From Selaginella moellendorffii (lineage: Eukaryota; Plantae; Lycopodiophyta), in contig NW_003314280.1 in the NCBI RefSeq assembly GCF_000143415.4, positions 2,153,549 to 2,217,548 of the forward strand: DNA of 64,000 nucleotides, in the 5' to 3' direction. The notes below the pieces were generated by a model. The model ran no database searches. It was given only the letters and a program-made list of their open reading frames with translations, and was not told where the DNA came from. Both the position numbers and the translations under genes were made by a program. Below, piece by piece: positions 18,395 through 58,225 of the stretch (positions within the stretch are counted from its first letter, which is position 1; every line of letters begins with the position of its first letter).

Positions 18395-20035
18395 ATGGAT
18401 AATTTACCAGATAGATATCTTCAGTGGATGGCCAAGAACATGAAAAAATCCACCTCAGGGAACTTTGCCAACAACATTCTTGCAAAACGGACTGAGCAAC
18501 CATCAATTCCATTGGAAGCTGATGCTCTTCGCAGCAGACTTGTAAATCAGCTCTGCCACTGCGCTGCAACAAAGGATCTGGTTGAGGGAAAACGTCTCCA
18601 TTCGTTGATTCTCACCTCGTTCGAGCTCCAGCATGATCGTTTCCTGCTTAACACACTGCTCCAAATGTATGGCAAATGTGGTGATATTGCAGCCGCGTGC
18701 CGTGTCTTCGATCAGATCAAGGATCCCAATGTATTCTCCTCTGCAATCTTGATCGCTGCATTTGCCAATAACGGGCATCTTGAGGGCGCACTCCCTGTCT
18801 TTGAAAGAATGCGTGAGTGTGATATAGTTTCCTTCAACACAATTCTCCAAGCTCTTGCGCAGCACTCCAAGCTCGATCAAGCAAAAGTTCTGTTTGACTC
18901 TATGCCCGAGCACAACACTGTCTCCGGCAACACTATTCTATCTGCATATGCCCAAAGTGGGCATTATTCTTATGCAGAGGCAGTGTTCGAATCCATGCCT
19001 CGTGTGGATACCATCACATGTACCGCCATGGCGTCGGCGTATTCCGCCTCCGGGAAACTCGAGCAGGCAAAGGCACTGCTGAATCTTATCCCTGAAAAAG
19101 ACTGCGTTGCATGGAACGTGACCCTAACTGCATATGCCGCTGAGGGGAATCTGGAGAGATGTAAGCAAATCTTTCTGGATATGCCCGAAAAGGACGTAGT
19201 ATCATGGACAGCGCTGCTCCAGGCTTATTCCTTGGCCGGTGACGTAGAAGCAGCAGCATGGGCGTTTGATTCCATGCCCGAGCACGATAGCATCGCTTCA
19301 TCGAATATGCTTCATGCATTTGCCAGCTCCGGGCATCTGGCAGACGCGAGGGCAGTGTACGACCGTGCGCCAGGGCCAAGCACCGCCGCCGGCAACGCCA
19401 TGGTGGCGGCATATGGTATGCACGGTGACGTGCACGCTGCCCTGGCCACCTTCTATGCGATGCCGTACGCAAACGTTACGTCGTGGAACGCTGTCTTGCA
19501 CGCACTTGCCTACGGTACGGGCGTGCATGAGGCGGGGAGATTCTTCGTACGGATCCCTGTGTGGGATGTGGTCTCGTGGAACACGATGATCGTGAGCTAT
19601 GCCCACTCGGGCAATGGGAAGAACGCGATCGATCTCTTCCGGAAGATGGGGCTTCTCGGGATCCATCCAAACGAGATCACCCTGCTGGGCGTGCTTCTCG
19701 CGTGTAGCCACATTGGGAGATTGCGGGAGGGCTGGAGGATCTTGGCGGCGATGGAGGACGATTTCGGCGTGAATCGCAGCGTCGATCACTACTGTGCGAT
19801 GGCCGACGCCGCGGGGAGAATTGGGCAGATCGGAATCGCCGAGCGGCTCATCCAGGAGATGCCGTTCGATGCCGACAATGCCGCCTGGGGCTGCCTGCTG
19901 GGGTCGTGCTTGATCCACAGCGATCTGGAGCGAGGCGCTGCCGCGGCGAAGCGGCTGCTGGAGCTGGATCCTGGGAGTGCCGCTGGGCACGTCCGATTAA
20001 GCAACGTCTTTGCTCCTCGGAGCCAAAAATTCTAG
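18395..20035 (+). CDS. PLS-class pentatricopeptide repeat protein, E-subgroup, no DYW
   Basis: 546-aa intronless ORF with MYGKCG, repeated MPEKDVVSW-type motifs and HYCAMADAAGRIG...MPFDADNAAWGCLLGSC, ending in the E domain. Confidence 0.93.
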   Translation: MDNLPDRYLQWMAKNMKKSTSGNFANNILAKRTEQPSIPLEADALRSRLVNQLCHCAATKDLVEGKRLHSLILTSFELQHDRFLLNTLLQMYGKCGDIAAACRVFDQIKDPNVFSSAILIAAFANNGHLEGALPVFERMRECDIVSFNTILQALAQHSKLDQAKVLFDSMPEHNTVSGNTILSAYAQSGHYSYAEAVFESMPRVDTITCTAMASAYSASGKLEQAKALLNLIPEKDCVAWNVTLTAYAAEGNLERCKQIFLDMPEKDVVSWTALLQAYSLAGDVEAAAWAFDSMPEHDSIASSNMLHAFASSGHLADARAVYDRAPGPSTAAGNAMVAAYGMHGDVHAALATFYAMPYANVTSWNAVLHALAYGTGVHEAGRFFVRIPVWDVVSWNTMIVSYAHSGNGKNAIDLFRKMGLLGIHPNEITLLGVLLACSHIGRLREGWRILAAMEDDFGVNRSVDHYCAMADAAGRIGQIGIAERLIQEMPFDADNAAWGCLLGSCLIHSDLERGAAAAKRLLELDPGSAAGHVRLSNVFAPRSQKF

Positions 20036-33699: not shown

Positions 33700-34563
33700 C
33701 TAGCTTCTGGCGGCCGGGACCGCGTATCCCTGGAGCATCCTCTCCACGTACTTGCCCAAGATGTCCACCTCCAAATTCACCCTGTTGCCCACGGCCTTGC
33801 CCGGGATCACCACCTTCTGCTGCGTGAATCCCACCAGCATGAAAGTGAAGGAGCTCTCCTCGTCGATCACATCCACCACCGTGAGGCTCGTCCCGTCCAC
33901 CGCGATGTATCCCTTGGGGACGATGTACTTGAGGAGATCCGGGCTCGCCCTCACCTTGATCCACAGCGAATTCCCCTCCGGTTCCATGGAAACGATGGTG
34001 CCGGTGCCATCGACGTGCCCCTGGACGAAATGCCCGCCCATCCGCGAGCTGGGCTGCAGCGATCGCTCCAGATTCACCTGCGATCCCGTGGAGACCTCGC
34101 CCAGCGATGTTCTTCGCAGCGTCTCGGGCGACAGGCCGACCGTGAAGGCGGCCGCGTCGAAGGCCGTGACGGTGAGGCAGGTGCCATTCACGGCGATGCT
34201 GTCGCCCAGCTTCACGTCGTCCAGGACGATGCTCGCCTCCACGGTCATCTCGCAGCCGCCATCGTCGCCCACGCTCACGCCGCGCACCCGGCCCATCTCC
34301 TCCACAATGCCCGTGAACATGGCCGTGATGGCGCGAGCCCTAGGCCTGTGCTGCTGCTTTCTTGCGCTCCTCCCCAAGGCCGCCGATCGCCAGGGATTGC
34401 CGCCGCCGAGGCTACTGTGGATTGCTGCCCTGGCGCAAGCTGCTGATAGATTCCACACTGCTGCTGTTGCTGCTGCTACTGCTACTGGACGCGGTGCTGG
34501 CGCCAATGCTAGCTGAGATCGCAAAGCGGATGAATTCGCTGCGGCGGGCGACGCGATCGACAT
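33700..34563 (-). CDS. Riboflavin synthase (alpha-chain type), plastid-targeted
   Basis: MFTGIVEEMG signature after the transit peptide; GDSIAVNGTCLTV, VNLERSL, MGGHFVQGHVD, KGYIAVDGTSLTV, VNLEVDILGKY. Confidence 0.97.
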   Translation of the reverse strand: MSIASPAAANSSALRSQLALAPAPRPVAVAAATAAVWNLSAACARAAIHSSLGGGNPWRSAALGRSARKQQHRPRARAITAMFTGIVEEMGRVRGVSVGDDGGCEMTVEASIVLDDVKLGDSIAVNGTCLTVTAFDAAAFTVGLSPETLRRTSLGEVSTGSQVNLERSLQPSSRMGGHFVQGHVDGTGTIVSMEPEGNSLWIKVRASPDLLKYIVPKGYIAVDGTSLTVVDVIDEESSFTFMLVGFTQQKVVIPGKAVGNRVNLEVDILGKYVERMLQGYAVPAARS

Positions 34564-36012
34564 CGCTGAGATCTCCTCCTATTCACCACCCATTGCCAGC
34601 CCTAGACGAAGAGCCCTAATTTCACGAAACTAAAATTCAGCTAAGGGGCCTAAAAATCCAGTTGTGAGATTTCTCAGCCCGCTAACCGCAGCAGGTGCCG
34701 ATACATCACCCCTCGCATTCTTCCTTGCATTCTTTTTGTTCGTTCTTCCACGCGTGTATTTTGTTGCTCTCATTATTCTAGCTCTAGAGCTCTCGTCAGT
34801 TCTTCCATCACTTCCTTAACGCAATAAACTGATTTGGCACACTCGAGTTCTTGAGAAAGAAGTTACTCTTGTATTTTTCATATACACCTTCCCAATAGCA
34901 TCTAGCCAACCCCTACACCTAATGTCTCATCCAAACTTAGACTCAGAACCTGAAGCTTGTTGCATTAGTGGTTCGATTGTTATTCACTGTAGTCTATGTT
35001 GCGAGAGCCTTGATCGAGCATCAGTTGAGAGCAGAAAAAGGCAACAATTTCTCAGGTTTTAGAAGAGCTTATCCTATTCCTAGATTGCTTGCCAGGTTTA
35101 GATAGCTGATGGCTGATAAAAGAAGAAGCCAATGGGATGATACAACACAAAGATCTGTGAGGTTCGAAGAAGTCACTGAACAGCTCCTGGTTACGTTAAG
35201 CCACTGCGAGCGTGGTAAGGGACAAGGAGAAGCTTTTAAGCGTGACTCCACTAGCCTAGTCACACCCACAAGCTTACGAGAACGCAATGCACTCAGCACA
35301 TCGCTCGGTGAAAATTAAAAGGTGGCGAAGATGAGGAATGATGGAGACAGTATCTCTAGACAATCTCTTGTGCATTTTGAGCGATCTGGACAAGAGTCAA
35401 GAACCATACATACCGCCTTAAATTACAATAGCAATGCTTCTGATGGTCTGATGCGTGATTTACAGGTATAATTCTTGGTTTGAGTTCAGCCACTGAGACA
35501 AGTTTTCAAAACTATAAAGAATGAGACATTAAATGTGTTGGATGTTTGAGGTGTTCCATCAAGGCATTTAGTTGTGTAGAGGCGTTGAGGAATAAGCAAC
35601 AGCAAGCAAAGTATAAAGCAAGTGGGAGATTGAAAGATTTCAGTAACCCATTTCAAAAATTGGGTCAAGATTCAAGAACATTGCATAGTAGTTTTTTATA
35701 AGAATTTCTAACAATTAAGGATTTTTATGGAGATTCAAATGCCTAATGAAGTGGGGTCTAGCAATTCATAAGTCCACAATACTAGTGACAAAATTGAAAT
35801 CATACTTTTTCATATGCTTTTCTCATTAGCTACCTAAGCTGAGTAAGTTTCTATATATATATATATATATATATATAGACCCATCTATATACAATTATAA
35901 TACACACAATTCTTCCTCCTCATATGCATATATTTGTAAAAGTCCACACTTGGTTTATGGTCCATGTTTTCACAGTTCTTGAGATTGACTTTATAATTCT
36001 TTAGAAGTCATT

Positions 36013-36142
36013 ATCAATTAGAAAAAATAAAGAAAGAATTTATTGTCATGAAAATTAAAATTTATATACCTCGAAATGACTTTAGGTATATAAATTTTAA
36101 TTTTCATGACAATAAATTCTTTCTTTATTTGTTCTAATTGAT
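36013..36142. repeat. Near-perfect inverted repeat: 59-bp arms with one mismatch, 12-nt loop
   Basis: 36013-36071 is the reverse complement of 36084-36142 except for one base. Confidence 0.95.
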
Positions 36143-36486
36143 GCACAAGAAAGAAGTTCATTAAAAACAACACTAGAAGCCTAAACAATTTGGTTGGAGT
36201 GGTTGGAAGAGCTCTAACAATATTAACACAAGTTTCAACTCAAACATCAAAAGGTAAATATATTTAGAATTAGTAGTTGTACTCTTTGTTGTTTCCTTAG
36301 TGGACTGTTGGATTACAATGTTTGCAGTGTTTTTAGATATAGCAAGAATATAAAACTCACTAAATTACCTTTATAGCAAAAATATAATGTTCAAAAACTC
36401 CGACAGGTTCAAAAAATATTTTGTCCAATTGATTCTGATTTACTGACCTAATCGTCTCCATTGGCTTCAATTGTCATAGATTCCTC

Positions 36487-36775
36487 ATGAATCTTGTCAT
36501 GGAAATGTATGGAGATGTATGGGAAGTGTGGGCATGCAGTACACGGCTTCAGAGTATTGCAATCGTTGCATTTGCCCATAACAGGCAAATGCAAGAATTT
36601 CTCGCCCTCATTCGTCAAATGAATTCTTGCAGCTATCAATGGCGATGCGGTGGAGATCCGTGCACTACGCTGCTGGCCTGGATAGCTCCACGTCCATCAG
36701 CATACCGCTGCTCAAAACTGGCCTGGATAGCTCCACATCCATTGGCATAGCGCTGCTCAACTCCTACGGACTACT
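36487..36775 (+). pseudogene. PLS-PPR gene fragment
   Basis: atgtatgggaagtgtggg (MYGKCG) at 36515-36532, followed by frameshifted VAFAHNRQMQEFLALIRQM. Confidence 0.55.
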
Positions 36776-38224
36776 GTGAATCCCTGCAAAGGGATCAAGC
36801 CCGCCCAACCATTGTCGACTGTGCCGATCACCGATGATTATAGCTCTACTGATGGAGCTATTAAAAGCTGACGCCTAGGGGAGCCTGTGTTTGCCAACAG
36901 TAGCGGGATTCTTCTATCCAAGGCGGGTAAGCGTTCTCGTTTTACGAGACGCACACCCCAATCACCTGGACGGTGGTGAGAAACACCGGGCAGAAGACCT
37001 CTCCAGGCCTGGTTGAAAGACTACTGCTGGAGCGTAAGTATGGACACATCAACCACGGCCTTTGGAGGATTGAAAGCCATGTCCCGGATGAGGCGATGTA
37101 CCCCTACTGTCTAATCTCCTCGCGATCCTGGAGCTGGCCAGAGGTTGCAAACGTATAATTGGAGCTTGATCAGGCTGCGATGCCAGTCTCAACGCCCTGG
37201 TTCCACTCGTCTGTCCAGTTCTTGGCGATGATCCCCAGTGGCAGAAGAAAATCTCGGCGATGGCATGGTCACCAGAGGGGCATCGTAAAGCGGCGGTGAG
37301 GGAGATGACTAGTTGGGACCTGTCCTCTCGGCTGGAGATCATGACGCACAGCCATTGAAGGTCGCCGAAAATCTTGGCTATCGGTAAACCGATGTCCAAG
37401 TTCGTGTCCTAAGTGTCGGTATCTCTGCTCCGCTCAATAGCTCGCGTTCCAGCAGTAGATGAGAACTTCCATATGGCGACTTGCTTGTGGTACCTCTGAT
37501 GTTGCAGCCTATGCTGTTCTTCCTTGGCAGTCTGCAGCACTCTCTGCGATCGTAATAAGGCTGCATCAAGTCACGCAAGGGGTGCAACTTCCAGCTCCTC
37601 TCCTATTAGCTAGATCGACCAGAAAGGGAGAAATTCCTACAAAGATCACCTACCTTTAAAAAAAAGTTTAATTGGGTCTCTGGCTGTGGACTCGAACCTG
37701 TGACCTTGCCATCCCGTCCAAATTTTACACTAATAGCTTGTTAACGTGTTTGTTATTTTCACATTTGAATGAATGGCTTGTTTCGCTCTGGGCATGGCGC
37801 AGCTGGCGCGAATGTTTCACAAGCCCTCTTCTAGTTCCAGGATTTTTTTGGCATAAACTTTGCTTCTCAGAACAAAAAAGTTTAAACTTCTTGCTCTGGA
37901 AGAATGAGTTTCATGGTTTTGAACATGGCCTTTCTTTAGGAACAAGGATCAAACTGAATTAAATTGTGATTCCTTTGTTATATGGTCCAATCCTGTGGAG
38001 CCTTGATCGAGCACCAGGTGAGAGCACAAAACAGCAATTATTTCTTAAGTTTCAGGAATTTCTCCCTCTTTCTCAGCCAAAACACCCATTTTCTCGAGTC
38101 TGCAGAGGAGGTGGAAACTTCGCCAGCCTTCTGTGCCACAGACCCAGAGCAAATGAGTCCTAAATACGATCCTTGAGTATACTCGACTTATTTTTGTTTT
38201 TTACGAAAACGCATACAATTCATT

Positions 38225-39373
38225 TTATATGTCATAGAGGTATGGATGTGGTTTTGGTGGTGGCCCGAGAGTATTTGGTTGCAATATAACTTTACCATGC
38301 CATGCTTCTCCATTTACACATGGATTATTGTATCCGTGGTAACGCACCGTTATGTAGTGAAAGTGTAAATTACCTGAGAGAATGAGAAGGGTGATCGATT
38401 GATGGAGAGATGGAAATTTACCTGGGATCACGGCAAGGATTGCCTCTAGGTACCTTAAGAGATCTTGGTTGTTCCCTGCTTGGGCTCGCTTGACAAGGAT
38501 CCCGTGGTAGTAGAGAAACTCCTCCTCCTTTGCTTGCAACTCGGTACACACAAGATCAATGGCGTCCTGGATGGTGTGCACGCACGAATCCATGAGCAAG
38601 CTCACGGACAGAATGTTACTGAGCTTTTTCTCGTCCCGGAACTCTTTGGCGAAAGAGAAGAGGTCGTTCACCATCCAGGCATGGTCCGATATTGCGTCCT
38701 GAGCGGCGAGGAAATCCTTGGACCCGGCCACATCGTCCCCAAGACCCAATCCCAGGAACATCTCGATCATCGGGAAGTATGGGGTGATCCAAACGTTGTC
38801 CCTCCTTAGCTCCTTGAACACTTGTGTGCTCTCATAGGCAACATCGAAAGTCTGCGACCACTGCTTGGTGTAAGCAAGGAAGCGATTGAGAGTGGGCGGA
38901 AGCATGAAGGAGCGGATTTCCGGCATGAGCTCCTCGCAGGCTCTGAGAAGAGGAACCTCCGCCGGGAGTATGGCCGGGTAATCGCTTCTGCCGGAGAAAA
39001 TGCTCAAGATGGCATCCCTGTACTGGGAGCTCCGCCCACCTTGGGAGATCTTGCTCTCGTCCAGCTGATCATCCAGCGCAGTGGTCAGCCACGTAAATTT
39101 GCCGCCCAAAAGCGTGCGCCTCTTGGGGCTGCTGGGGGGCGTCAGGAAGGCGGCGAAGCTTGGGACCCTCCACTGCGCTTGGCGCTTCTTGTGTTCCGGG
39201 CTTGTGACGCCGAGGTAGCTGAAGATCCATTCGTCCGATTCCTTGCAGATCGAGGTGTAGTCGGGGTGACACTTGACGGGATGGGCAAGGAGGATTTGAG
39301 GGAGAGAGTAGCTCTTGAGGCTCAGCAAATGCTCTACTACATGGATTTTGCTCGATGAAACAATAGCCTCCAT
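38225..39373 (-). CDS. MTPSL: Microbial terpene synthase-like protein (class I, alpha-domain only), ~366 aa after removing a 48-nt intron at 38374-38421
   Basis: DDQLD (DDxxD), LRRDN, NDLFSFAKE (NSE/DTE) and C-terminal RY. In-frame GTAAAT...CTCTCAG intron. Confidence 0.93.
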   Translation of the reverse strand: MEAIVSSSKIHVVEHLLSLKSYSLPQILLAHPVKCHPDYTSICKESDEWIFSYLGVTSPEHKKRQAQWRVPSFAAFLTPPSSPKRRTLLGGKFTWLTTALDDQLDESKISQGGRSSQYRDAILSIFSGRSDYPAILPAEVPLLRACEELMPEIRSFMLPPTLNRFLAYTKQWSQTFDVAYESTQVFKELRRDNVWITPYFPMIEMFLGLGLGDDVAGSKDFLAAQDAISDHAWMVNDLFSFAKEFRDEKKLSNILSVSLLMDSCVHTIQDAIDLVCTELQAKEEEFLYYHGILVKRAQAGNNQDLLRYLEAILAVIPGKFPSLHQSITLLILSGNLHFHYITVRYHGYNNPCVNGEAWHGKVILQPNTLGPPPKPHPYLYDI

Positions 39374-42207
39374 ACTAATATGAAAACAGTACCATCAGCG
39401 TCTCTAATTTAACAAGGAATGCATAGAGATTCCTAGAGCATTGCATTAATTCAATAGCATAATATATACTAATTTAATCACACTTAATTATAGCATCAGA
39501 GTCAAAGGAGAAATATGCTATTTTACCATGAAGATAAATAAAAAGAAAATATAGAGCAAAAGAGAAGAAATGAAAAGTTAAAAGAAATCTAGACAATGCA
39601 AAAAATAAATTTAAAGAAAAAACACACTCCAAACACTCTTCTAAACCAATCAAAATTGCCTTTCATTTTTATCAATGTAATGGAATATTAATTTAATTAA
39701 CCTATAACCAGGTCTGTGAGGATAGTGCTAGATCGTCGCTACACTGCCATGCCAGACAAAGCCCTGCGCAATCGCCTCCAACGTGAGCCTCGATTTGGGG
39801 CGCTCTACCTCTGCTACCGGATCAATTCGGAGAGCCTGCCGATGATCGGGGATTTGTGTGGGAGATTGGGGCGGGGAATTACTTGGTGCCCATATGCGTG
39901 GGAAATGTCAATGGGGGCGAGGATTCCACCCCGGTGATTGTTACATTCCAGCAGTGAGACCTGGAATTCAATCTCGTGAGGCATTAGTAAATTGCTGGTA
40001 GGCATGGGTGGTAATTGTGCCGATTTATTAATGGTAAATTAGAGTTGCGTCAAAGCAAAAAATGGGGACACTTTAAATAATTAGGTCTGGTTAGTAATAT
40101 AATCTTTAGTGTTCTAAGTATATTCCCAATTAAAATAAAGAATTTTTATTTACCCAGCATTTTCATTTATCAGATTCCCAATCACAATATATTATTAAAG
40201 TTCTCACATTGCATAAGGAACTCCCCAAGAAGCATTTGAATTGCAACAACACTCTTAAAGAGATACACCCTTCCTAATTTACTTGAAATAGCTGTGAAAT
40301 GTCTTTAAATAGTGTTATGTGCACTAATTCTTATAGTTTATAACCTTCTCTCAGTTTGGCATTTACTAATATAAATTTTTTTGCGACAGAAATGGCCGCT
40401 GCTGCGACGATTGAACTCTCCCAATGAGTAACAGTGTGATCAAGCCAATGCCGAGGACGAACAAGGCCACACCAAGTCCATCGATTCGCTGGTCTGCATC
40501 TACATGCCATCGCCATATTATACTAGTCTTTCAACGAAGACAAACAGCATTGTGATGCGATACTCTTGATCGAGATTCCAGGAGACTTTCAAGAAAAGCA
40601 TATAAAACGTCAGCTTGCATGGAAGCAACTGGTACCTTCTTTTTCTGTGACAACGTTGAGCAGTTGGAGGAAGATTTTATTCGGGAAGATTTTATTCGCG
40701 ACTGGCGCTACGCCCGGGCATCTCTCTTATTGACTAATAAGAATTGAACAGACACGACTGGTCAACTTGACATAAGAGGGAATCACGAATGTTCTCTCAA
40801 TACAAACAAGACAGTGGCCGATCTAGCCCGGACGTGAGGACGAAACTTACTCTATTGGGACACCAACAGCACGCCTTCTTCGTAGAAAACATGTGTACGG
40901 GTTTCTTACATTTTCGTCCCTGTGGATCCTGAGCTCCATACAGTTCTTAGCGACGAGGAGCTTTCTGAGCTCTCGAGCATTCTCTATGGCAAGAGGTATT
41001 ATTCTAGAAGAGCGCTTTTCCGCGGGGACTGACTAGCTTGAAAAAAATCACAGCTTCTTCAGTCGTGTCTTTAAATCCGTAGCACAGGGGGATGGCTCTA
41101 GTCCTCGGCATTCCGAGGACGGGGATGAACAACGAGATGATTTACTGGAACCGTTGGAATCGAGGCTTTTGTTTCTAGCCGCGGATATAAGTGCACTAAG
41201 TGATCTTTCTTTCTTTTCTTCTAAGTATTATACTACGTCTTAGTGGTCGGAGGCTCAGATACAGGGACTTTCTTTTACAAGTTCGGCAGAAACTCAAACT
41301 CCCGTACTCCCTGAAACTTTCTATAGAAGCCGAGATCTTCAAGGATCCTATTCTTGCCGCTCTTGACTTTTTTTCACTCTTTTTTCAGTCCTCTGAAGAT
41401 TGATGATGATCCGAGTGACGTTGAAACCCTTGTGAGAGAGCTTCCACCCTGTCGTTGGCGTAAGGTGAGGACAGATAATCCAAGGAAGGAAAAGCACAAA
41501 CATTAAACACAGCCGACATGAGCTCACACCCTCCAAGCTTGCGAGGTTTTTGCGCCATGACCCATCCTGGGATTGGTAACGAGCAGCTTCCACCAGCATT
41601 TTTCCAGAAAGCTCCTTCGCCATCTGAACACAGGTTAATTATATCCGAAAACATCACAGGAATGTACCAATCTTTGCAGTGTGGACATAGAGAGGCTCTA
41701 AAAAAGTTACTGTAATCGACCATGATTTCGTGGTATTGTTCTTAGACAGTCGCAGCTCTTGTAGGGTGGTCAGCTGGCTGCTACAAAACTCGAGTCTCAC
41801 GCAGCAAGACACGTAACTCACCACAGCTTCTAACAAAGCTAGGAAGTGTTTACTTCGTTTTTGCTGTGGCCGCTGCGACATACATCGCAGAACTATGATG
41901 CCCATGTTGAGATGTTTAGCGCTTCCATTCTTATGCGAAATCTATGTTTCTGCAATCTATGGGGAACGTTTATAGCTGATGTTGTAGTGACCACTTTGGG
42001 ACCGGATTACCTTCGTGTTGCCTGGGCAATCTATGCTCTAGATTTCCCAGGCGATTGAAGATGGAGAAACCTCTCTGTGAGTCGGTGTATAAGATAGTTG
42101 GAAGCTTGTATTGAATGCGTTTTTATATTCCTTGTTCTTGTTGAAGTAGAGACTTATGGACGTTGCGTGGTGATTTTCTGCATATGGTACGCTTCATTCT
42201 CTTGGAG

Positions 42208-42905
42208 TCAGCCTAATAAGCTAAACTCTAAAATGTGTAAGAGTCCGATGTAGTTATACAATTTAATTGGGAGTGGTAGCACTTGCCATGAATCCTGTCT
42301 ATTAAGGTCGTATGTCACTAGCGTCGCTTGCCAACCATCAGGAATCCAGTAGATTACATTCCTGTGAATGTTTATGGAAGTTTTGTAGAAATGTTTGGGA
42401 GAGATGCTCTCCGGTGCCCGGCTTATCATAACTGCGTCCTCCCCTCTTGCCCAAACACACCAGTGCTCTTTCCAAGCAAATAGAGCTTGCCTCCCCACCT
42501 TCGAGTTCTTCACTCCCGAGCTTGACGTGGTGGAGTGAAACGAGCTTGCCATTGTCTGTGCGATAGCTTAGTAGCTTCACCTTTTTCTCGGATCCAAATA
42601 GAATGGATGATGTTCCCACAAACAGCGGAAGAGGACGTGAGAAACTTCGCGAAATCCTAACTCTTGATATCCTCATTTTGGTTCTGCTCTGTGACCAGCC
42701 ACTCAGACTTCCAGGAGCTGAGAACTGCCGTTTGAAAGAATCTACGCAACCGAAATACTACTCGAAAGCTCTGCTCGTGATCCAAGAGCGAGAGCTGTTT
42801 GCAAGGCTTGGAAACAGATTATTGATTCTTCGTGGTTTTCATGCCGCTACAGGGATCCATCGCCCTGCATCTTACTGACAAAGAGGGCTTGCCCATTTGC
42901 AACAT
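42208..42905 (-). pseudogene. F-box gene remnant (copy a)
   Basis: Homologous to 53650-54638 and frameshifted. The N-terminal piece (RAVCKAWKQIIDS) is inverted at ~42789-42905. Confidence 0.75.
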
Positions 42906-44737: not shown

Positions 44738-44985
44738 CATTGCTGCATAAAATGTTTTTCTTATAACTTTTCAACTATATATATATATATATATATGTAA
44801 GAAGAAACAATTATATAACTTTTTATTCTAATAGAGTACTCATTAGCATGAAAGCACACTAATGGAGAAAATCACACTGATCTTCTTTTTGGAGAAAATC
44901 TTGCACTAAAGGGTATGAGCCTAACATACACTTGAATATATGTTATTTTATTAAAATTTATGAGTCAAGTTTTACAATCTAGTTT

Positions 44986-45135
44986 CCGTGATCGCGCGAG
45001 CCCTATGCCTGTCCAACGCCGCGGATTGCCGCCGCCGGGGCTGCTGGTGTGGATTGACGCCCTGGCAATAGATTCTACACTGCTGCTGTTGCTGTTGGAC
45101 GCGAGCTGAGATCGCAATGCGGATGAATTGGTCAC
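44986..45135 (-). pseudogene. Duplicated 5' (transit-peptide) fragment of riboflavin synthase
   Basis: Matches 34323-34540 with deletions (ccgtgat-gcgcgagccc, ggattgccgccgccg, gctgagatcgcaa-gcggatgaatt). Confidence 0.8.
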
Positions 45136-45178
45136 CAGCAGCCCTAGACGAAGAACCCTAAAAATGCAGTGGTGAGCC

Positions 45179-46899
45179 ATGGCGCTATGTGGATTGGCTT
45201 CGCCGCTGCCGAGATTCCACCGGAGCAGGAGCCCATACATCGAGGTACTCACTCCTCGCATTCTTCCTTGCGCGCGCATTCCTTTTGTTCGTTCTTCCAC
45301 GCCTGTAGTTTGTTGCTTGTCCTCATTAGTTTAGCCTTTCTAGCTCCAGAGCTCTCGTCAGTTCTTCCATCACTTCCTGGACGTGAGGTCTACGAGGACG
45401 AGACTTCCTCGATTGGGACACCAACAGCACAGGCTCCAGGTTCTCGGTATGCATGCCTTCTTCGTAGAAAACATTTCATTTGTGTATGAGTTTCTTACAT
45501 TTTCGTCCCTGGCAGCTGCTGTGGATCCTGAGCTCCATACTGTTCTTGAGTTAGCTAGCGATGTGGAGCTTTCTGAGCTCTCGAGCATTCTCTATGGCAA
45601 GAGGTACGAATCTAGAAACGCTCTTTTCGGAGAGGGCTGACTAGCTCGAAAAAAATCACAGCTTCTTTAGTCCTGTCTATAAGTCCGTAGCACAGGGCGA
45701 TGGCTCTAGTCCTCGGCATTCCGAGGACGGGGAAGAAAAACGAGATGATTTACTGGAACGGTTGGAATCGAGGCTTTTGTTTCTAGCCGCGGATGCCAAA
45801 TCTACTGTGACGTAAGTGCATTGCTTTGGAGCAAGTGTTTCTTTTTTAATTGTTGTACTACCGTTTAGTGGTCGGAGGCCCAGATACAGGGACGTTCTTT
45901 TACAAGTTCGACAGAAACTCAAAATCCCGTGCTCCCTAAAACTTCCTACGGAGGACTTAGAAGCCGAGATATTTCTTTTCCTCCTCCAACAATCTCCAAG
46001 GCAAGCAATCATGCTATTCTTGCCGCTCTTGACTTTTTTTTTTCAGTCCATCGGAGCCTCTGAGGATTGACGATGATCCGAGTGACGCTGAAACTTCCCA
46101 GTCTGGGTCATGGCGCAAAAATCTCGCGGCAGCTCTCAAACTTGGAGGCCGTGAGCTCGTGTCCGCCGTTTTTAAAGTTTGTGTTTTTCCTTCCTTGGAT
46201 TATCTGTCTAACCTTACGCCAACGCGACAGGGTGGAAGCGCTCTCACAATGTCCACGCTCCAACGATTGGTACGATCCTGTGATGTTTTCGGATATAAAT
46301 TAGCCTGTCTTCAGATGGCGAAGGAGCTTTCTGGAAAAATGCTGGTGGAAGCTGCTCGTTACCAACTTGCTAGAGAAGCTCTAAAAAAGGCACTGTAATC
46401 GACCATGATTTCGTGGTAGTGTTCTTAAATAGTCGCAGCTCTTGTAGGGTGGTCAGCTGGTTGCTACAAAACTCGAGTCTCGCGTGACAATGCTTGCAGC
46501 AAGACAGGTAACTCACCACAGCTTCTAACAAAGCTAGGAAGTGTTTACATTGTTTTGCAGTTACTTGCTGGGGCCGCTGCGAGATACATCACCATTCGTA
46601 GCACTATGATGCTGCTTGGCCCCATGTAAGATGAGATGTTTAGCGCTTCCATTCTCATGTGAAATCTATGTTTTTGCAGTCTATGGGGAACGTTTATAGC
46701 TGATGTTGTAGTGACCGCTCTGGGACCGGATTACCTTCGTGTGGTCCGGGCAATCTATGCTCTAGCGCAGGTAAATACGTTTCTTAACTTGATAGAGCTT
46801 GCTAAATGCAGATACACTGGAACTTAGATACGTCTGACGAGAACTTATGGATGGAAGCGAGGATCCCTTCTATGTCAAGGTACTCTAAAAGTTCTCTGA
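45179..46899 (+). CDS. Conserved uncharacterised plant protein (At1g73470-like), about 12 exons, apparently intact
   Basis: Exons join in phase: DPELHTVLELASDVEL...LESRLLFLAADAKST/GRRPRYRDVLL...LPTEDLEAEIFL...LSGKMLVEAARYQ...LWGTFIADVV..LGPDYLRVVRAIYALAQ/IRLTRTY. The model needs GC donors at 46001 and 46390. Confidence 0.78.
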
Positions 46900-47087
46900 A
46901 AGTACTTGAGCTGCTATCGATTTCCCAGGTGATTAAAGATGGAGGAACCTCTCTGAGCTGCCGGTGTACAGAGATAGTTGGAAGCTTGTATAACTTGAAT
47001 GCGTTTTTTTATTCCTTGTTCTTGTTACTGAAGTAGAGACGTTGTGAAGTTCTCGTGGTGATTTTTTCTATATGGTACTCTTGGAGT

Positions 47088-47830
47088 GAGTCTAATAAGC
47101 TAAATTCTATTAATGTATAGGAGTCTGCAATGGATCTGGGAGTGCCATGAGTCCTGTTTATTGAGGTCATATGTCACAGCATTGCTTGGCAAGCATCAGG
47201 AATCCAGTAGATTACATTCTTGTGAATATTTATGGAAGCTGTGAAGAAACGTTCTGGAGAGATGTCCTCTGGTGCCCGGCTTATCATAACTGCGTCCTCC
47301 CCTCTTAGTCGAAGAGCTCAAACACGCCGGTGCTGCTCTGTCCAAGCAAGTTCAGCTTGCCTTCCCAACCCATGAGCTTAAAGTTCCCTTAAAGTACTTC
47401 ATTGACGTGGTGGAGTGAAAGGAACTCCCCATTGTCCGCGCGATAGCTTAGTAACCTCGCCTTTCTCTCCCATCCAAAGAATGGATGATGTTGTCACAGA
47501 CCAGGGAAGAGGTTGTGACAAACTCCGCGAAATCCTCGTTGATATCCTCATGATGGTCGTGCTCTGTGACCAGCCACTCAGACTTCCAGGAGCTGAGGAC
47601 TGCCGCCTCCATGAAACTACGCAACGGAAATACTACTCGATGATCCACTAGTTGCAACCTTCTGGACTCTCAAGCGTTGTAAATGGCAGCCTTAAGATGT
47701 GCCGTTCCCACTACTGCTTGACCTTTTCTCCACAGCGGGGCAAGAACTCTGGATGGTGGAAGTGGGTTTCCCACCCAAAAGGCTCTGCCTTCCCGGAGCT
47801 TCAACTGCCCAGACCCAAATGGCGATTTTA
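47088..47830 (-). pseudogene. F-box gene remnant (copy b)
   Basis: VLSSWKSEWL...DFAEFVTTSSLVCDNIIHS homologous to the other copies; fragmented. Confidence 0.75.
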
Positions 47831-49274: not shown

Positions 49275-49830
49275 AAGAAGCCTCTGAAGATTGATGATGG
49301 ACGCTGAACCCCCAGTCATGGCACAAAAATCTTGCGGACGGCTCTTAAACTTCGCTCATATGTCTTCAGATGGTGAAGGAGCTTTCTGAAAAAGTGCTGA
49401 TGGAAGCACCAACTTGCCATCTAAAGAAGCTACTGTAATCGATTTCCTGGTAATGTTCTTAACCTATAGGGTGGTCAGCTAGTTGCTATAAACCTCAAGA
49501 CAGGTAACTCACCAGAGCTTCTCATAAAGTTAGGAAATGTTTACTTTGTTTTGCAGCTACTTGCTGGGGCCGCTGCGAGAAACATCACCATTCATAATGC
49601 TGATTGGGCCCATGTAAAACGTTTAGAGCTTCTGCTCTTGTGGCAAATTTATATTTTATTCCGCTGGCTGAAATGTAGACACTCCAAAACGTAGATACAT
49701 CTGGTGGGAACTTATGGATGGAAGCGAGGATCTGTTCTATGCCAAGAGGTACTATAAAAGTTCTCTGAAATTACTTTAAAGCAGCTATGATTGGTTTAGG
49801 GACCTGTTTATAGAGATAGTTGGAAGCTGA
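49275..49830 (+). pseudogene. Third, 3'-only remnant of the At1g73470-like gene
   Basis: Matches 46055-46990 with many deletions (cttcagatggtgaaggagctttctg, ggggccgctgcgaga, aacttatggatggaagcgaggatc). Confidence 0.75.
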
Positions 49831-51539
49831 AGTAAAACAATTAGTAAAGTGATCAAAACTTTTTAAAGTTTATTTATAAAAATTCTATAGCTAGTTTTAT
49901 TGTGATTTAAACATAGTTCAAAAATAGTTAAATATTTTTGTATAAAAAGGCTAAGGTAATTTTAGGGTATCACTTTTACTATAATAATCACTTGAATTAT
50001 CATTCTTTAGTTTTTTTAGCAAGCTTCATTATAGATAATTCATTTATTTTAGATTTTTAGTCATGATTCATTAAATGTTGAAAAAAAAGAGTGAATAAGA
50101 GAGAAATAAAATTCTAAATTTATATAAGATCTAATTATAACTAAATTTAGATTTATAACCTTTTGTATCACTATTTTTCACAATATATAATTTTTTAAAT
50201 TTATTTACTATGTCATAACAGTTTATTAACATTGCCACATTTAATTTCTATGTGGTTCCAGAATTGCCACATAACACTAATAAATATTTATAAAAAAGTT
50301 GGATCATTAATTAAATTTAAATCTAAACTATCACTCAATTTATAAAGCACTTCGATTGTATTAAAATCTCGTTACTCCACTTTTATTCACAGGCCTTTTC
50401 CCTTTACATTTGAACCCCATGGATCATTTTTCAAGTTATTTCCTTTGGTTGTTTACAATCTTCATAACTAGAGTTAAATTGGTTGTAGTTGTTGAATTAG
50501 TGATTGTAATTATAAAACTATTATAAGCTCTTGAAGTCAGATTTTCAACTCTCTTAAACCATTTTTAATTCAAATTTTAAATTATTCACTTTAGTTATTT
50601 ATAATTCATCATATTTCTTTGCAAATTCATATTACAACTTCCTGAAAGCCCCACTCTTTTAACATTCTACCCCTCATGTTAAAATGTTGTTTGGAAATAT
50701 CAACTCAACATGTGATACAAAACCCTTAACCAATTAATAGAGTCAAATATAAAACTTTAAATGGAAATTCAAACTTCTAAAGAGATCATCCATCTCAATA
50801 CCACAACAAGATCTTTAATTGAAATATGCACTTTTATGCTTATAACTACAAGTGGACTTGAATCACTACTTGCTTTTGGCTACACTGCTACATTGCTAGA
50901 TGGAGTTAGATTGTTACTTGCCAGAGCTGGATTGCTACACCACTGTGTTTCTATATAGAGTTGGATCACTACTTGCTCATCTATGCTACTTAGCTGGTGC
51001 TAGATACTTGCTTAGCTCATGCTGGTCTAGTCTGGTTAGTCTATTGCTCATGTGCTACTCACAATACATGTCTAGGTAAAATGAGTTGCTCCTAGAGATT
51101 AGTGAGAACAAAAAAAGCAACAAGAAGTAGGAACTCTTACCAGGATGGGTTTCTATAAGGAAGGTTAATTCAAAGAAAAAGTTGATACAGTTTTTGTGAA
51201 CGGAGCAGCATCGAAGCTTTGGTATAGGCATGGACAAGCAAAGGTAGCTGGCTCTTACTCTTTACATATGAAACTATTAAAATCGTCTTTGAGCATGCCT
51301 CAACCAAGCTGCATGAATTGACCTTTGTCGAGATTTGGAATGCCTTTTCTTTTCTTTTTCAGATGAAGATCTGGAAAATCGAGGTAAAAATTAATCCTAG
51401 AAAAGAACCACTCATAGCATAAATACTTTCACCTTAAATATATCAAAGAGATGTAGAGGTATGGTGATAGCACGGTGAACTGAAAAGGTAGAACACCTCA
51501 TGTATTGCATATTTCTAAATCAAAAGAAACTCCAAGTCT

Positions 51540-52493
51540 AAGCTAATGGTAAGTCTAAAGTAAATTTCACATGTACGGAGGCAATGGTTTTGGAAGTGGT
51601 ACCACTTCCCATGAATCTTGTTTACTGAGGTTGTAAGTCACTAGCATTGCTCGATTAAGAGAAATGCAGTACATAATACTGTTGTAGATGTTTGCAGACT
51701 TTATGACATGAAATCTTGCAGAAATGCTCTCTGGGGCCTGGCTTATCAGAACTACATTCTCACCTCTTACTTCAAAGAGTCCAAATAAATGAATGCCTCT
51801 TTCTCCAAGCAAGTAAAGCTTGCCATCCCAACTGAAGAGCGTAAAACTCCCTTCAAGTACTTCAGACCCCAGCTTCAAGTAGCGGTGTGAAAGACGCTCA
51901 CCATTGTCCGCACGATAACTCAGCAGTGCCACCTTGCTTGTGGATCCAATGGAATGGATGATTGTCACAAACGGTGGAAGAGGACGTGATAAACTCCATA
52001 AAATCCTTCCTGCTGATATCCCCATTCCGGTGCTCTCTGATCAACCACTCCGACTTCCAGGAGTGAAGGACTGCTATTTGCATACACTCATGTAACCGAA
52101 ATACAATTCGATAGCCCTGCTCATGATCTATTAGAGTTGCAATCTCAAAATCATCTGAAAATGGCAGTAATCTGTGCCCTTTCCACTTATTGAAGAATGG
52201 GTTCCCCACCCAAAAGTCTCTACCTTCCCGGACCAGCACCAGCCCGGACTGAGAGACCGACTGGATATAGGTAGATGGAAATTCTAACTCGAACCACTGA
52301 CCCAGACCCAAGTGGCAAATGTTACACAACAAAGACTCACCCTCTTCTTTTGAAATATGATGCAGGGCGACGGATCCTCGTAGCGCCTTAAAAACCATGG
52401 AGAATCAATTATTTGTTTCCAAGCCTTGCAAACAGCTCTCGCTCTCAATAGACTCGGCCCAGGAAGCCTCAAAAGGATATCTACATGCTCCAT
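51540..52493 (-). pseudogene. F-box protein, full length but frameshifted (copy d)
   Basis: MEHVDILLRLPGPSLLRARAVCKAWKQIIDSPWF F-box motif. The body is split across three ORFs (52284-52499, 51898-52398, 51567-52025). Confidence 0.85.
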
Positions 52494-52994
52494 CACCAAC
52501 CCTAACCTAAGAAAATGTAATTTGTGACTTTTATTTTTGTTACATGAAATTCATTTTACCTTTAAAGTGTTTAAATTGTTTAATATTTTTTCCACTTTCC
52601 AATCCACATCTCAGATGTAATGGGGCCTGGGTAAGGAGGGTGCAAAGTTTGCTCACCTGCGCTTTGAGCGCAAGAGACCAGCAAAAGATCCCGCAAAGGA
52701 AATCGTCAACTAGATGGAGTGAACATCCTGAAAGGATTATAAAATGAAAATATCAAACAAAAATTCTTATTGAGCACCAGAACAGCATATAGATAGAACT
52801 GATATAACATTTGCTATTATCACTTTCAAAATACAGTTTACTAGAATTCTACTACCCAAAGATAAAAATGATATGAAATGATCATACTTGCTATGCAAAC
52901 ACCGGTGAAGAATAATTTAGAAGCAGAGCACATTACAAATCTAGAACCCCAATTCCTGATGAAAACTTAGCGCTAGATGTCATGTTCTTTCACA

Positions 52995-53605
52995 GCTAAG
53001 GGGCTTGAAGCGCTTGAGAACCACAGGTGTTGTCAACCTCCAAGCTCATTTGCATCCTGTCGCAAGAAAAGCCGAGCTCCATGCCCCCGGTAAGCTGTGC
53101 CTCTCCCACTACTCAGGTCCTCGAGCAGCCAGTCATGCACGCTGGGAATTATGCTCTCCCGACGCTAGCACCAGAAACTCGCATCCACCATCGCGAAGAT
53201 CAATCTAGATCTCCACAACCTCGGGAACAGCCACCACGGCCTGCTCCGCGGGCCCCAGACCGGCATTGCTCTTCGGACTTCCACATGACATCGCCCAAGG
53301 CCACCTCACTTGCAGCCCAAACTGGCTCTTCTCGCCCCGAACGCTCGCGCTGGCAATCTCGAGCCCCTAGTTCCTCACCGCCGTCGCCCCGGCCCTGACC
53401 GCCCTCTCGCAGTCCCCGGGCATCGTCTCGGGCTTGTGCGCCCCCTCGCAGTCCCCGGGCATGTGATCTCTCTCGTGGCCCCGAGACATGCATGACCTCC
53501 CGGAGGGCGATCCGCAGATGAGCGTCCTCCGTTTTGGGCCTGGCTCCCACCGTGATCCAGAGTTCTTCATGACTACGGGATCGCTCTTCCAGTCCTTCTG
53601 TGCCT
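52995..53605 (-). pseudogene. PP2C pseudogene, inverted deleted copy of 56930-57991
   Basis: KDWKSD, HKPETMPGDCERAVRAGAT, ALGDVMWKS and KRFKPL fragments in shifting frames. Confidence 0.88.
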
Positions 53606-53649
53606 TGAGTTTAAAAGGCAAACAAACAAAAGGTTCCTCTTGATCGGTG

Positions 53650-54638
53650 ATGGAGCATGTAGATATCCTTTTGAGGCTTCCTGGGCCGAGTCTGTTGAGA
53701 GCGTGTTTGCAAGGCTTGGAAACAAATAATTGACTCTCCATGGTTTTCAGTCCGCTACAGGGATCCATCGCCTTACATCTTATTGCCATCATCAAAAGAA
53801 GAGGGCTGGCCTTTCTGTAACATATGCCACTTGGGTCTGGGTAAGTGAATTTCCATCCAAATTTATCCAGGCGGTCTCCCAGTCTGGGCTGGTGCTGGTC
53901 CGGGAAGGCAGAGGCTTTTGGGTGGGGAACCCATTCTTCAATAAGTGGAAAGCACATGGATTAGAACTGCCATATGCAAAGTTTGATCCAGAGATTGCAA
54001 CTCTAGTGGATCATGAACAGGGCTATCGAGTAGTATTTCGGGTGCGGAGATTCGTTCAAACGGCAGTCCTCTGCTCCTGGAAGTCAGAATGGCTGCTCTG
54101 TAACCACCTTGAGGAGGATCTCAAGAAGGATTTTGCGGAGTTTGTCACATCCTCCTCCACTGTTTGTGACAACATCATCCATTCCATTGGATCCAAAAGC
54201 AAGGTGGCGCTACTGAGTTATTGTGCAGACAATGGTGAGGTTCTTTCACTCCGTTACTTGAAGCTGGGGTCTGAAGTACTTGAAGGGTGTTTTAGGCTCT
54301 TTGGTTGGGATGGCAAGCTCTATTTGCTTGGAAAAAATGGCACTCACTTATTTGGACTCTTTGAAATAAGAGGTGAGAATGTAGTTCTGATTAGCTGGGC
54401 ACCAGAAAGCATTTCTGCAAGATTCCCCTTCATAAAGTCTGCAAACATCGACAACAATATTATTTATTGCATTTCTCATGTTAAGCAAGCGATGCTAGTG
54501 ACTTATAACCTCAGTCAACAGGGTTCATGGCAAATGGTACCACTTCCAGAACCATTGCCCTCATGCATTGGAATCTTAAATATTGTAAAGTTTAGTTTAG
54601 ACTTACCATTTGGCTTAGACTTGTGTAGTGCCTTCTGA
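53650..54638 (+). pseudogene. F-box protein with two 5' frameshifts (copy e)
   Basis: MEHVDILLRLPGPSLLRA, then frameshifts, then a long open C-terminal region (SQSGLVLVREGRGFWVGNPFFNKWK...). Confidence 0.82.
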
Positions 54639-55534
54639 TTTCAAACGTGGACAAAAGCAACTCACTTTCAAGCCAATAATTGATTCTGCACTTGTGTGTC
54701 CTTTATATTTACTTAAGGTGAAAGGTTGTTTGCAAGCGACTACATCAAAATGAGAGGAAGTGCTACTATGAGCAGACGTAATATCTCCGCAAGAAACAAA
54801 ACTCGATTCCATGCTTTAGGAATGTTTTTGTGTAAATAAACCATAAACATTGCTAAGCAATTCTGATGTTACTTCCAGTAGAAAACTTGCTCTAGGACGA
54901 GCTCCCCGACCCTCCACCAAAGCGGAGATCCACCCAAGAGTAGCCAAGGAAGTACTTTACTGCCGCCAAAAGGTTCTTCAAAGCTGTGGTCGAAAGAAAC
55001 AAAACGCTAAGAAAGCGCCACTCGAAGAACATGGAGCTCAGGAAGGACGTACAGAATAAAAACAGAAAAATGAAAGGACGCATACCGAGAAACCAAGAAG
55101 CTTGAGCCTAGCAGCTTTCTGGATTGAGAAATTTTCATTCCTGCTATAAATCTCATCCAAGATGCAGGACGAGCTGGAAACGAAGTGTTAAGAACAAACA
55201 GGACAAAGGAAAAGAATGAGAGCGATAGCCTGGATCATCCTGTGGTCAATCCTGGCTCCCTTGGGATGAGAGCGATGAATAGCAGCTGGAATTGTCTACG
55301 AAGACTACACTTGGAAGGTTACAATTGCCGATGACTTAACAGGAAAAGAGTGTGTAAGCACACTTCCGCTGAAAGGAAGCGGAAAGTGGTCGACTGCAGT
55401 TTGGTTGACAATTAAAGAGTTTCATATAAGCGTATACCAAAGGGCCGAAAGCTTCGAAGCTGTGGCCTGTTTATAAGAAACTAAACCAAAGGAGCAAACA
55501 GAGAACAAACCAGCTGTCCACAAAGACCAATCTT

Positions 55535-56716
55535 CTAGAGTATAGATCTCGCATTCGATCCTCTCTCTCTCTTCAAAGCACGCAGCATTCGGACGCGACA
55601 GCGGGGGAAGAAGGTTACAAATGGCGCCAAGAAAGAATGATACCTGAGCTCTCCGTAGCCCTTCCGCGACCTAGAAACTATCCAACAAAGCGGTACTCTT
55701 AAAGATGAAGCGCCCGCGTCCTTGTCGTAGCGTCCAGCCGCCTCCTTGACTGCTGTCTCAAACTCCCTCCATATTTCTCGCTCCTCTACACTCAAACGTT
55801 TTTTTAGCCATTCTTTTCCTAGAGATTCCTTACCTCGGTTTTGGAGATATTGGAGGTCCGCTGCTATCGCCTGGGCGGGCACAATCGCCTTGAACGCGCC
55901 AGCATCTCCAAGATCCATGTCCAAAGGAGAGCAGAGCCCGAAATCCAGGATCCATATGCTCCTCCCGGAGAGATGCAGCTGGACGTCGCGGAATCTCCAG
56001 CCCTCTCCAAACACGCCGCGAGCAAAGAGCTCCCCGACGCTCCGAGCGACGCTGCTGGCTTCCAGGTGAGGGAAAACCTCCTGCACATCACAAGCACACA
56101 CAACCGGTTCGTTTATCACCTGGAGTTTGTCGCGCTCATGCTCCGTGAACGTGTAGAGCCAAGCCCGGTCTCCAAGATCGTCACTGTCCTGCTTTGCCTG
56201 CGAGAATGGGATCTTGTAGGTCCTCTGGAAGAGGGACTCCACAGCCTCCTCCTCGATGGGTGGCAACCTCTGCATGACAATGACGGGAGCGTTAATGCGC
56301 TTGAGATGCTTGAGCACGAGAGGCCTTATCTCTTCGTCCACGCGCTGGAGCAGTGCCTGTTTTGGGGCGAAGGCGATCACCTCCGGCGATGAACCGATCT
56401 CCTGGCAACAGCCCTCTGCGCCTCCACCTCCATCTTGATCGCGTCGTACGGGATGTCTTTCCGCTTGGCAACTTTGATGGCGATCTCTCCCTCGCATATC
56501 ACCAGCCCCTGCAGTCCTCCATCCCAACTCGTTGCCAGTTCCTGCTTGGCCGCGCTCGTCCCCGCTCCGGCTTGCCGGCGTTCCACTAGGTTTCCTCCGC
56601 CGTGCTTGCCGCGATCCTTGCCGCCGCCAGTTGCCGCCGCTAGGATCGCGATCGGCCGCTCCACCTTGGCGTGCGGCTCTTGACCCCTGGATGGGAGCTT
56701 TATACGGGATCAACAT
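55535..56716 (-). pseudogene. Divergent protein-kinase-like (DUF3669-like) gene with one apparent frameshift near 56400
   Basis: N-lobe motifs (DGGLQGLV, EIAIKV, IKMEVEAQ) are in ORF 56377-56664. C-lobe motifs (IVMQRLPP, WRFRDVQLHL, IWILDFGLCSPLDMD) are in ORF 55535-56716. Intronless. Confidence 0.55.
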
Positions 56717-56841: not shown

Positions 56842-56929
56842 CCAATACATGTTAAGGTTATAAACGCACATGGCGCTCTTGCCTTTTAAAATTCAATCAC
56901 AGTGAAACGTTTTAGGGTATCAAGTAGCG

Positions 56930-57991: not shown

Positions 57992-58225
57992 GAATTCTAG
58001 AGCTGTTATGAGCTGTTGCAATCTATAAGAAATTTTAACATATATCCTGGAATCTATGTTTGGTGAAACTTGAAAGTCTAGAACCTTAGACATCTAGACT
58101 TCCAGAATAGCAAGGTTCTAGATTTTCAACTTTCACTATGAGGCAATATATGTTTTAACTTGCATGGATCTTTAGCTGGTAAGAATCATGTTTTAGGATA
58201 GTCTAAAGCTTTTGGAGCTGAGGCC

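Follow-up and report, generated by a model that had tools for sequence, protein, structure and literature searches.

Selaginella moellendorffii carries a family of microbial terpene synthase-like (MTPSL) genes, the SmMTPSL genes (PMC7826640). Members of this family encode a single alpha domain, contain zero or one intron and have DDxxD and NSE/DTE motifs. The Selaginella family reportedly numbers 48 members. Here we describe a gene of this type, coding for a protein of 366 aa, in a 64,000-nucleotide stretch of contig NW_003314280.1 (positions 2,153,549 to 2,217,548 of the forward strand; hereafter the window), where it is carried on 6,013 bp of DNA inserted into an exon of a duplicated gene. 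In Helitron and Pack-type capture, a host gene and gene fragments are likewise moved as one block into another gene, but none of the features that define such elements (termini, hairpin, target site, terminal repeats, target-site duplication) is present at this locus. The insertion of filler DNA, or of ectopic copies, during double-strand-break repair is established in plants. The locus resembles plant filler-DNA insertions in its blunt junction without target-site duplication, in the lack of element ends, in its mosaic content and in its single site. With 6 kb and a whole gene, however, it stands at the large end of their range. Identifiable ectopic donors and junction microhomology are the hallmark of plant filler DNA. 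Since the junctions are blunt and unique and transposon hallmarks are missing, a one-off dispersed duplication by break repair, rather than the activity of a mobile vehicle, appears to be the likeliest origin of the insert (probability approximately 0.6).

Junctions of the insert and the duplicated host gene

Self-comparison of the window revealed two related units, A and B, of which unit A consists of two separated parts (34388-34816 and 40830-42874) and unit B is continuous (45017-47640). Their aligned identity is 84% (Kimura two-parameter distance, K2P, 0.18), and they differ by many insertions and deletions. A first-pass annotation of the window had claimed that copy A is interrupted by 6013 bp relative to an unbroken paralogue, and both the junction string and an alignment across the break bear this out. 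The string CACTTCCTGGACGTGAGG is unbroken in copy B and has its single occurrence in the window at 45371-45388 (0 occurrences expected by chance), whereas in copy A the left half stops at 34816 and the right half restarts at 40830, with 6,013 bp between them. A global alignment over the break had 37 of 38 identical positions in its left flank and 10 of 10 in its right flank. No base can be shifted from one side of the break to the other; thus, the insert extends exactly from 34817 to 40829 (6,013 bp, no strand assigned) and is without a target-site duplication. It starts with TAACGC and finishes with CTAGCCC, which reads GGGCTA...GCGTTA on the opposite strand; the right end is ...GATCTAGCCC. 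A terminal CTAG followed by CCC had been reported before and is indeed present. Its suggested reading as an imperfect duplication of CCT did not hold, because only two of the three bases agree, which is the chance level.

Mapped onto copy B, the break corresponds to 45378|45379, which is 29 nt within coding exon 2 of an AT1G73470-like gene and interrupts a Leu codon (CT|G). This gene (SELMODRAFT_97348; 45179-46896, plus strand) is the intact paralogue. The full-length RefSeq model P0015, an allelic protein located on a scaffold of 2,350,400 bp, aligns to it along all 354 aa, and it is this mapping that placed the break in exon 2, in agreement with the earlier proposal that the insert splits an exon of a duplicated gene. 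Exon 1 of copy B (45179-45244) is followed by an intron with GT..AG borders, exon 2 (45350-45446) and intron 2 (45447-45515). For identification of the gene, the longest open exon of copy B (46033-46395) was searched against a representative protein library, which returned the partial model of SELMODRAFT_97348 (P0012). This model, which is located on the scaffold of the window, is 100% identical to copy B, and a word search with it yielded P0015 as well as 692 relatives that span Klebsormidium, bryophytes and flowering plants. All of these relatives are uncharacterised, one being labelled 'like AT1G73470', and Pfam gave no match for the open reading frames (ORFs) of the gene. Since the gene is conserved and, in copy B, intact, with coding exon 2 contiguous at the position of the break, and since the insert is without intron ends, the 6 kb represent an insertion and not a deletion in copy B. 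The contiguous exon must be the ancestral state, which fixes the polarity as an insertion into copy A.

Copy A is a pseudogene independently of the insert and bears several other lesions, while copy B is whole. The start codon of its AT1G73470-like gene is changed from ATG to AAG, the donor of intron 1 is deleted, a deletion of 24 nt takes away the end of exon 2 together with its donor site, and a 265-bp inversion (41430-41694) breaks up the middle exons. The latter stretch runs opposite to its counterparts in copy B and in a third partial copy (49316-49792), the third copy being collinear here with copy B and not with copy A. In the left half of unit A (34388-34816, plus strand; matching 45017-45378), the 5′ end of riboflavin synthase is accompanied by a degenerate exon 1 of the pseudogene and by 34788-34816, which are the first 29 nt of exon 2; the right half (40830-42874, plus strand) contains the remainder of the AT1G73470-like pseudogene.

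The insertion point lies 253 bp upstream of the ATG of a riboflavin synthase gene (33700-34563, minus strand), which is intact, encodes 287 aa (Pfam Lum_binding, 1.8e-47) and has an identical protein in entry P0006 of the 2,302,610-bp scaffold. Beside copy B, a dead 5′ fragment of this gene (45017-45097, minus strand) matches 34388-34475, and the ORF at 44965-45300 (minus strand) displays the NSSALRSQLA stretch. Prior to the insertion, the start codons of riboflavin synthase and of the AT1G73470-like gene were head to head, approximately 80 nt apart. The decay of the two units is complementary: unit A retains riboflavin synthase with a dead AT1G73470-like gene, and unit B retains the AT1G73470-like gene with riboflavin synthase reduced to a 5′ scrap.

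The terpene synthase gene and its related loci

The microbial-type terpene synthase gene SELMODRAFT_413118 occupies 38225-39373 of the insert on the minus strand and encodes 366 aa (PF19086, 2e-17). It comprises exon 1 (39373-38422), an intron of 48 nt with GT..AG borders (38421-38374) and exon 2 (38373-38225). Database entries were taken as the spliced proteins of this gene (P0003) and of the AT1G73470-like gene (P0015), and exons were compared one by one, not joined. In this comparison, both exon translations of the synthase were 100% identical to P0003 (SELMODRAFT_413118). The 382-codon ORF covering 38225-39373 (minus strand) matched SELMODRAFT_412568 and SELMODRAFT_406174. The motifs DDQLDE (residues 101-106), NDLFSFAKE (236-244) and RY (328-329) are intact, and PF19086 (Terpene_syn_C_2) is the only domain found, which corresponds to a single class I alpha domain without the N-terminal domains of plant terpene synthases. 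Judged by its sequence, the gene is a member of the MTPSL group, as it has the alpha domain only, a length in the range of approximately 320-370 aa, Asp-rich and NSE/DTE motifs and the annotation of a family member, in agreement with the earlier description of a complete MTPSL gene in the insert. RefSeq names it '(E)-2-epi-beta-caryophyllene synthase-like'. The enzyme itself is nothing new, the gene being already annotated as SELMODRAFT_413118; for SELMODRAFT_412568, no mention was found in the literature. An alternative RefSeq model, XP_024532934.1 (P0004; 361 aa), does not splice out the 48-nt intron and takes its 3′ exon from 38134-38048 (minus strand). This form would be without the C-terminal RY motif.

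Protein clusters at 90% identity contain the synthase of the window locus, which belongs to the 2,302,610-bp scaffold, its allele and one further locus. The allele, SELMODRAFT_412568 (P0001; EFJ26999 / XP_002972082), is located on the 2,350,400-bp scaffold and is 97.5% identical. Riboflavin synthase on the same scaffold is EFJ26998 / XP_002972081. Because these accessions are consecutive in both numbering systems, the record numbering suggests that riboflavin synthase and the terpene synthase are neighbours on the other haplotype scaffold as well. From this accession order, the insertion is most likely common to both haplotypes and predates their split, and a polymorphic empty site on the other haplotype scaffold is unlikely. 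Between the two scaffolds, amino acid identity is 97.5% for the terpene synthase, 98% for riboflavin synthase and approximately 98% for the AT1G73470-like protein (about 6 differences in 354 aa, counted by hand). The S. moellendorffii assembly reportedly comprises two haplotypes, and the allelic identities are as that predicts.

Two gene models represent the further locus, SELMODRAFT_406174 and SELMODRAFT_403726, whose scaffolds measure 4.1 and 6.2 Mb. Their proteins are approximately 95% identical to the synthase where aligned, and both models have internal deletions and look broken. The run-on C-terminus of SELMODRAFT_403726 (P0005) matches the window weakly at 38138-38079 (E 0.28) and then, more clearly, at 40665-40410. 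A tblastn search with residues 299-384 of P0005 against 40410-40665 (minus strand) gave three collinear matches, two of them with E 1.3e-4 (37% and 44% identity) and the third with 73% identity across 22 aa (E 0.16). At the sequence level, this paralogue thus appears to share some non-coding flank with the insert. The stretch concerned (40410-40665, minus strand) is non-coding, lies 1.0-1.3 kb upstream of the synthase in the window and resembles read-through sequence located downstream, 3′ of the gene, at SELMODRAFT_403726. Such a reversed flank order would fit a repeated flank or a tandem donor or arrangement.

Termini and content of the insert

A gene-capturing unit had been suggested to disperse the MTPSL family, together with the remark that no transposase, terminal inverted repeat, 5′ TC or subterminal hairpin is visible. 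The remark was confirmed by our domain, repeat, fold and end checks; the suggestion found no support, as every Helitron, inverted-repeat or Pack-type, long terminal repeat (LTR) and retrocopy feature tested failed. Instead of the 5′ TC and 3′ CTRR of Helitrons, the insert has the ends TAACGC...CTAGCCC, in which CTAG lies 3 nt short of the end. No Helitron-like 3′ subterminal hairpin was found, the last 80 nt folding with -6.3 kcal/mol (z -0.27 compared with shuffled sequences). The host site is CCT|GGA (T|G) and not the A|T site of Helitrons, although the absence of a duplication is as in Helitrons. No terminal inverted repeats link the two ends of the insert; the best inverted match of the terminal 16-mers (12/16) lies elsewhere. 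The break shows no target-site duplication of fixed length, as would be left by a transposon with terminal inverted repeats, a Pack-MULE, CACTA or PIF element. LTR retrotransposon features were not found either, as there are no terminal direct repeats and no A-run at either end of the insert, and the retained 48-nt intron rules out a retrocopy. When approximately 30 translated segments of the insert, both ORFs and stop-free stretches, were searched with Pfam, the synthase was the only match, and no transposase, Rep/helicase or reverse-transcriptase domain was detected. Compared with the remaining 58 kb of the window, the insert gave no match at the level of DNA or translation, and no second copy of either insert end occurs within the 64 kb. 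A 13-nt inverted match between 37609-37621 and 40815-40827 (12/13) was considered as a terminal repeat and rejected (E 1.2 regionally, no target-site duplication).

Across the insert, GC content ranges from 0.25 to 0.59. The direct repeat of about 60 bp described in the first-pass annotation is 58 nt long, with copies at 35005-35062 and 37998-38055 (both plus strand; 83% identical, E 4e-13) that are spaced 2,993 bp. The second copy follows closely on the stop codon of the synthase, on its 3′ side, and lies partly within the 3′ exon of P0004. A three-way repeat of 34997-35062, 37998-38055 and 40553-40574 was rejected, the first two being alike and the third sharing barely more than CTTGATCGAG. 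The 59-bp hairpin is part of an AT-rich palindrome of 130 bp (36013-36142, no strand assigned), with 59-nt arms (36013-36071 and 36084-36142) that are 98% complementary and a loop of 12 nt. An Rfam scan of the insert gave a sub-threshold mir-559 match on this palindrome only (32 bits, compared with a gathering score of 95). The palindrome is possibly a small foldback element or one resembling a miniature inverted-repeat transposable element. For the claimed pentatricopeptide repeat (PPR) fragment, tblastn with a PPR protein of the window (18395-20032) identified a decayed, frameshifted stretch of approximately two motifs at 36448-36633 (plus strand; E 2.3e-4); Pfam gave no match there, so that this assignment is weaker.

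A tandem repeat of two 45-nt units was detected by repeat search at 36673-36760 (plus strand). The GC profile also confirmed the GC-rich patches that had been noted, with a GC content of 0.53-0.55 at 36800-37600 (no strand assigned). This patch had no Pfam match, and a word search with its 119-aa open stretch found no homologue. The insert also contains a (TA)13 run. By exact look-up, none of ten insert ORFs was annotated, and tblastn over the half of the insert that lacks the synthase detected no further, decayed copy of this gene. A string resembling a tRNA T-arm (GGACTCGAACC, at approximately 37680-37700 within 37664-37710; the reverse complement of a T-arm plus acceptor) was rejected as a tRNA, since neither ARAGORN, also with relaxed settings, nor Rfam found one. 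It may be due to chance or represent a very decayed tRNA-derived element.

Origin of the insert

We propose that a tandem duplication copied a short block comprising the 5′ end of riboflavin synthase, the AT1G73470-like gene lying head to head with it and a portion of the gene that follows. Copy B would have kept the AT1G73470-like gene, and copy A would have turned redundant. Afterwards, but before the two assembled haplotypes diverged, the 6,013-bp DNA would have entered copy A within coding exon 2, bringing with it the complete synthase with its own flanks and 48-nt intron, the PPR scrap and other sequence. Most likely, another synthase locus was copied at the DNA level and the copy was captured as 'filler DNA' in the repair of a chromosome break, either by end joining or by synthesis-dependent copying. 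Of the features of break repair, we see the blunt junction and a related synthase locus on other scaffolds, the latter at the protein level and not in a comparison of template DNA. Several observations weigh against such a one-off repair copy. The donor locus is not seen, so that junction microhomology or template switches cannot be read. The mosaic nature of the insert, with its range of GC content, PPR scrap and palindrome, also fits a capturing element or successive insertions. The 58-nt internal repeat and the flank piece found upstream here and downstream in the paralogue hint at a repeated flank, for which a single repair copy does not account. Finally, the adjacency on the other haplotype is based on accession order and not on DNA.

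Part of this evidence would also suit an origin in several events, in which a smaller synthase-bearing piece came first and was enlarged by later insertions or duplications. The 58-nt repeats, 2,993 bp apart, bracket the non-synthase half, and the stretch of approximately 3 kb between them, holding the palindrome and the PPR scrap, is a candidate for a later addition; composition shifts sharply along the insert, and copies A and B, at a K2P of 0.18, are old and have accumulated many further insertions and deletions as well as the inversion. However, no nested element can be defined by ends or a target-site duplication of its own, the 13-nt inverted match is at chance level and has no duplication, and the order of events is unreadable without donor or paralogue DNA. 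We therefore regard a stepwise origin as unlikely, although worth keeping in mind. A non-canonical or decayed gene-capturing transposon, be it Helitron-like, Pack-type or of unknown kind, might also have brought the synthase and the scraps, and may spread the family. The mosaic cargo of an intact gene, a PPR fragment and patches is what such an element would carry, a CTAG stands 3 nt before the right end, and the close paralogue on other scaffolds has non-coding flank pieces in common with the insert. Against this, the insert opens with TA where a Helitron would have TC, its true 3′ terminus is CCC, and it sits at a T|G site in the host instead of A|T. A subterminal hairpin, terminal inverted repeats and a target-site duplication are missing, the ORFs and stop-free stretches scanned contain no remnant of a transposase, Rep/helicase or reverse transcriptase, the 64 kb hold no second copy of either end, and there are two loci only in the 90% clusters. 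Moreover, supposing that the insertion and the split from the 95%-identical paralogue are of about the same age, the ends of an element should remain readable. An element of this kind is, in our estimation, quite improbable.

Still less probable, and indeed doubtful in the extreme, is an unrecognised gene-carrying mobile unit without target-site duplication or terminal repeats that spreads microbial-type terpene synthases in Selaginella. One possibility for such a unit is a circular or tandem intermediate, which would explain why the flank is upstream of the synthase here and downstream at the paralogous locus. The least credible reading is that the 6 kb are ancestral and were deleted from copy B, or that the junctions are an assembly artefact. 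By itself, the junction sequence fits insertion and deletion alike. The unbroken sequence, however, is coding, forms one exon of a gene that is conserved and intact, and is contiguous also in the allelic P0015; the insert has no GT..AG ends. It also speaks against this reading that the terpene synthase is listed beside riboflavin synthase on each of the two haplotype scaffolds, which were assembled independently.

The locus is a clean and datable case of a member of a horizontally acquired terpene synthase family reaching a new chromosomal site, and provides useful background on the expansion of the Selaginella MTPSL family. What came in was genomic DNA, intron and flanks of the gene included; it settled in a redundant gene copy next to a housekeeping gene, and no transposon can be recognised. 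The mechanism favoured here, a copy made in break repair, is an ordinary one and the gene is already annotated; the importance of the locus would rise only if the insert ends proved to be common to other copies.

Several other duplications are present in the window. Copies of an opposite-strand gene occur at 42200-42900 (minus strand), 47143-47689 (minus strand), 51517-52497 and 53646-54641, and include an inverted pair with 81% identity. A 302-aa ORF at 53730-54638 has a sub-threshold match to the F-box-associated beta-propeller family PF24750. The region 1530-15824 is a tandem array of units of approximately 5 kb that are 82-94% identical and without long ORFs. Two adjoining ORFs of 393 aa (55535-56716 and 56912-58093, both minus strand) have no Pfam match, and 52999-53438 is similar to 57984-57497.

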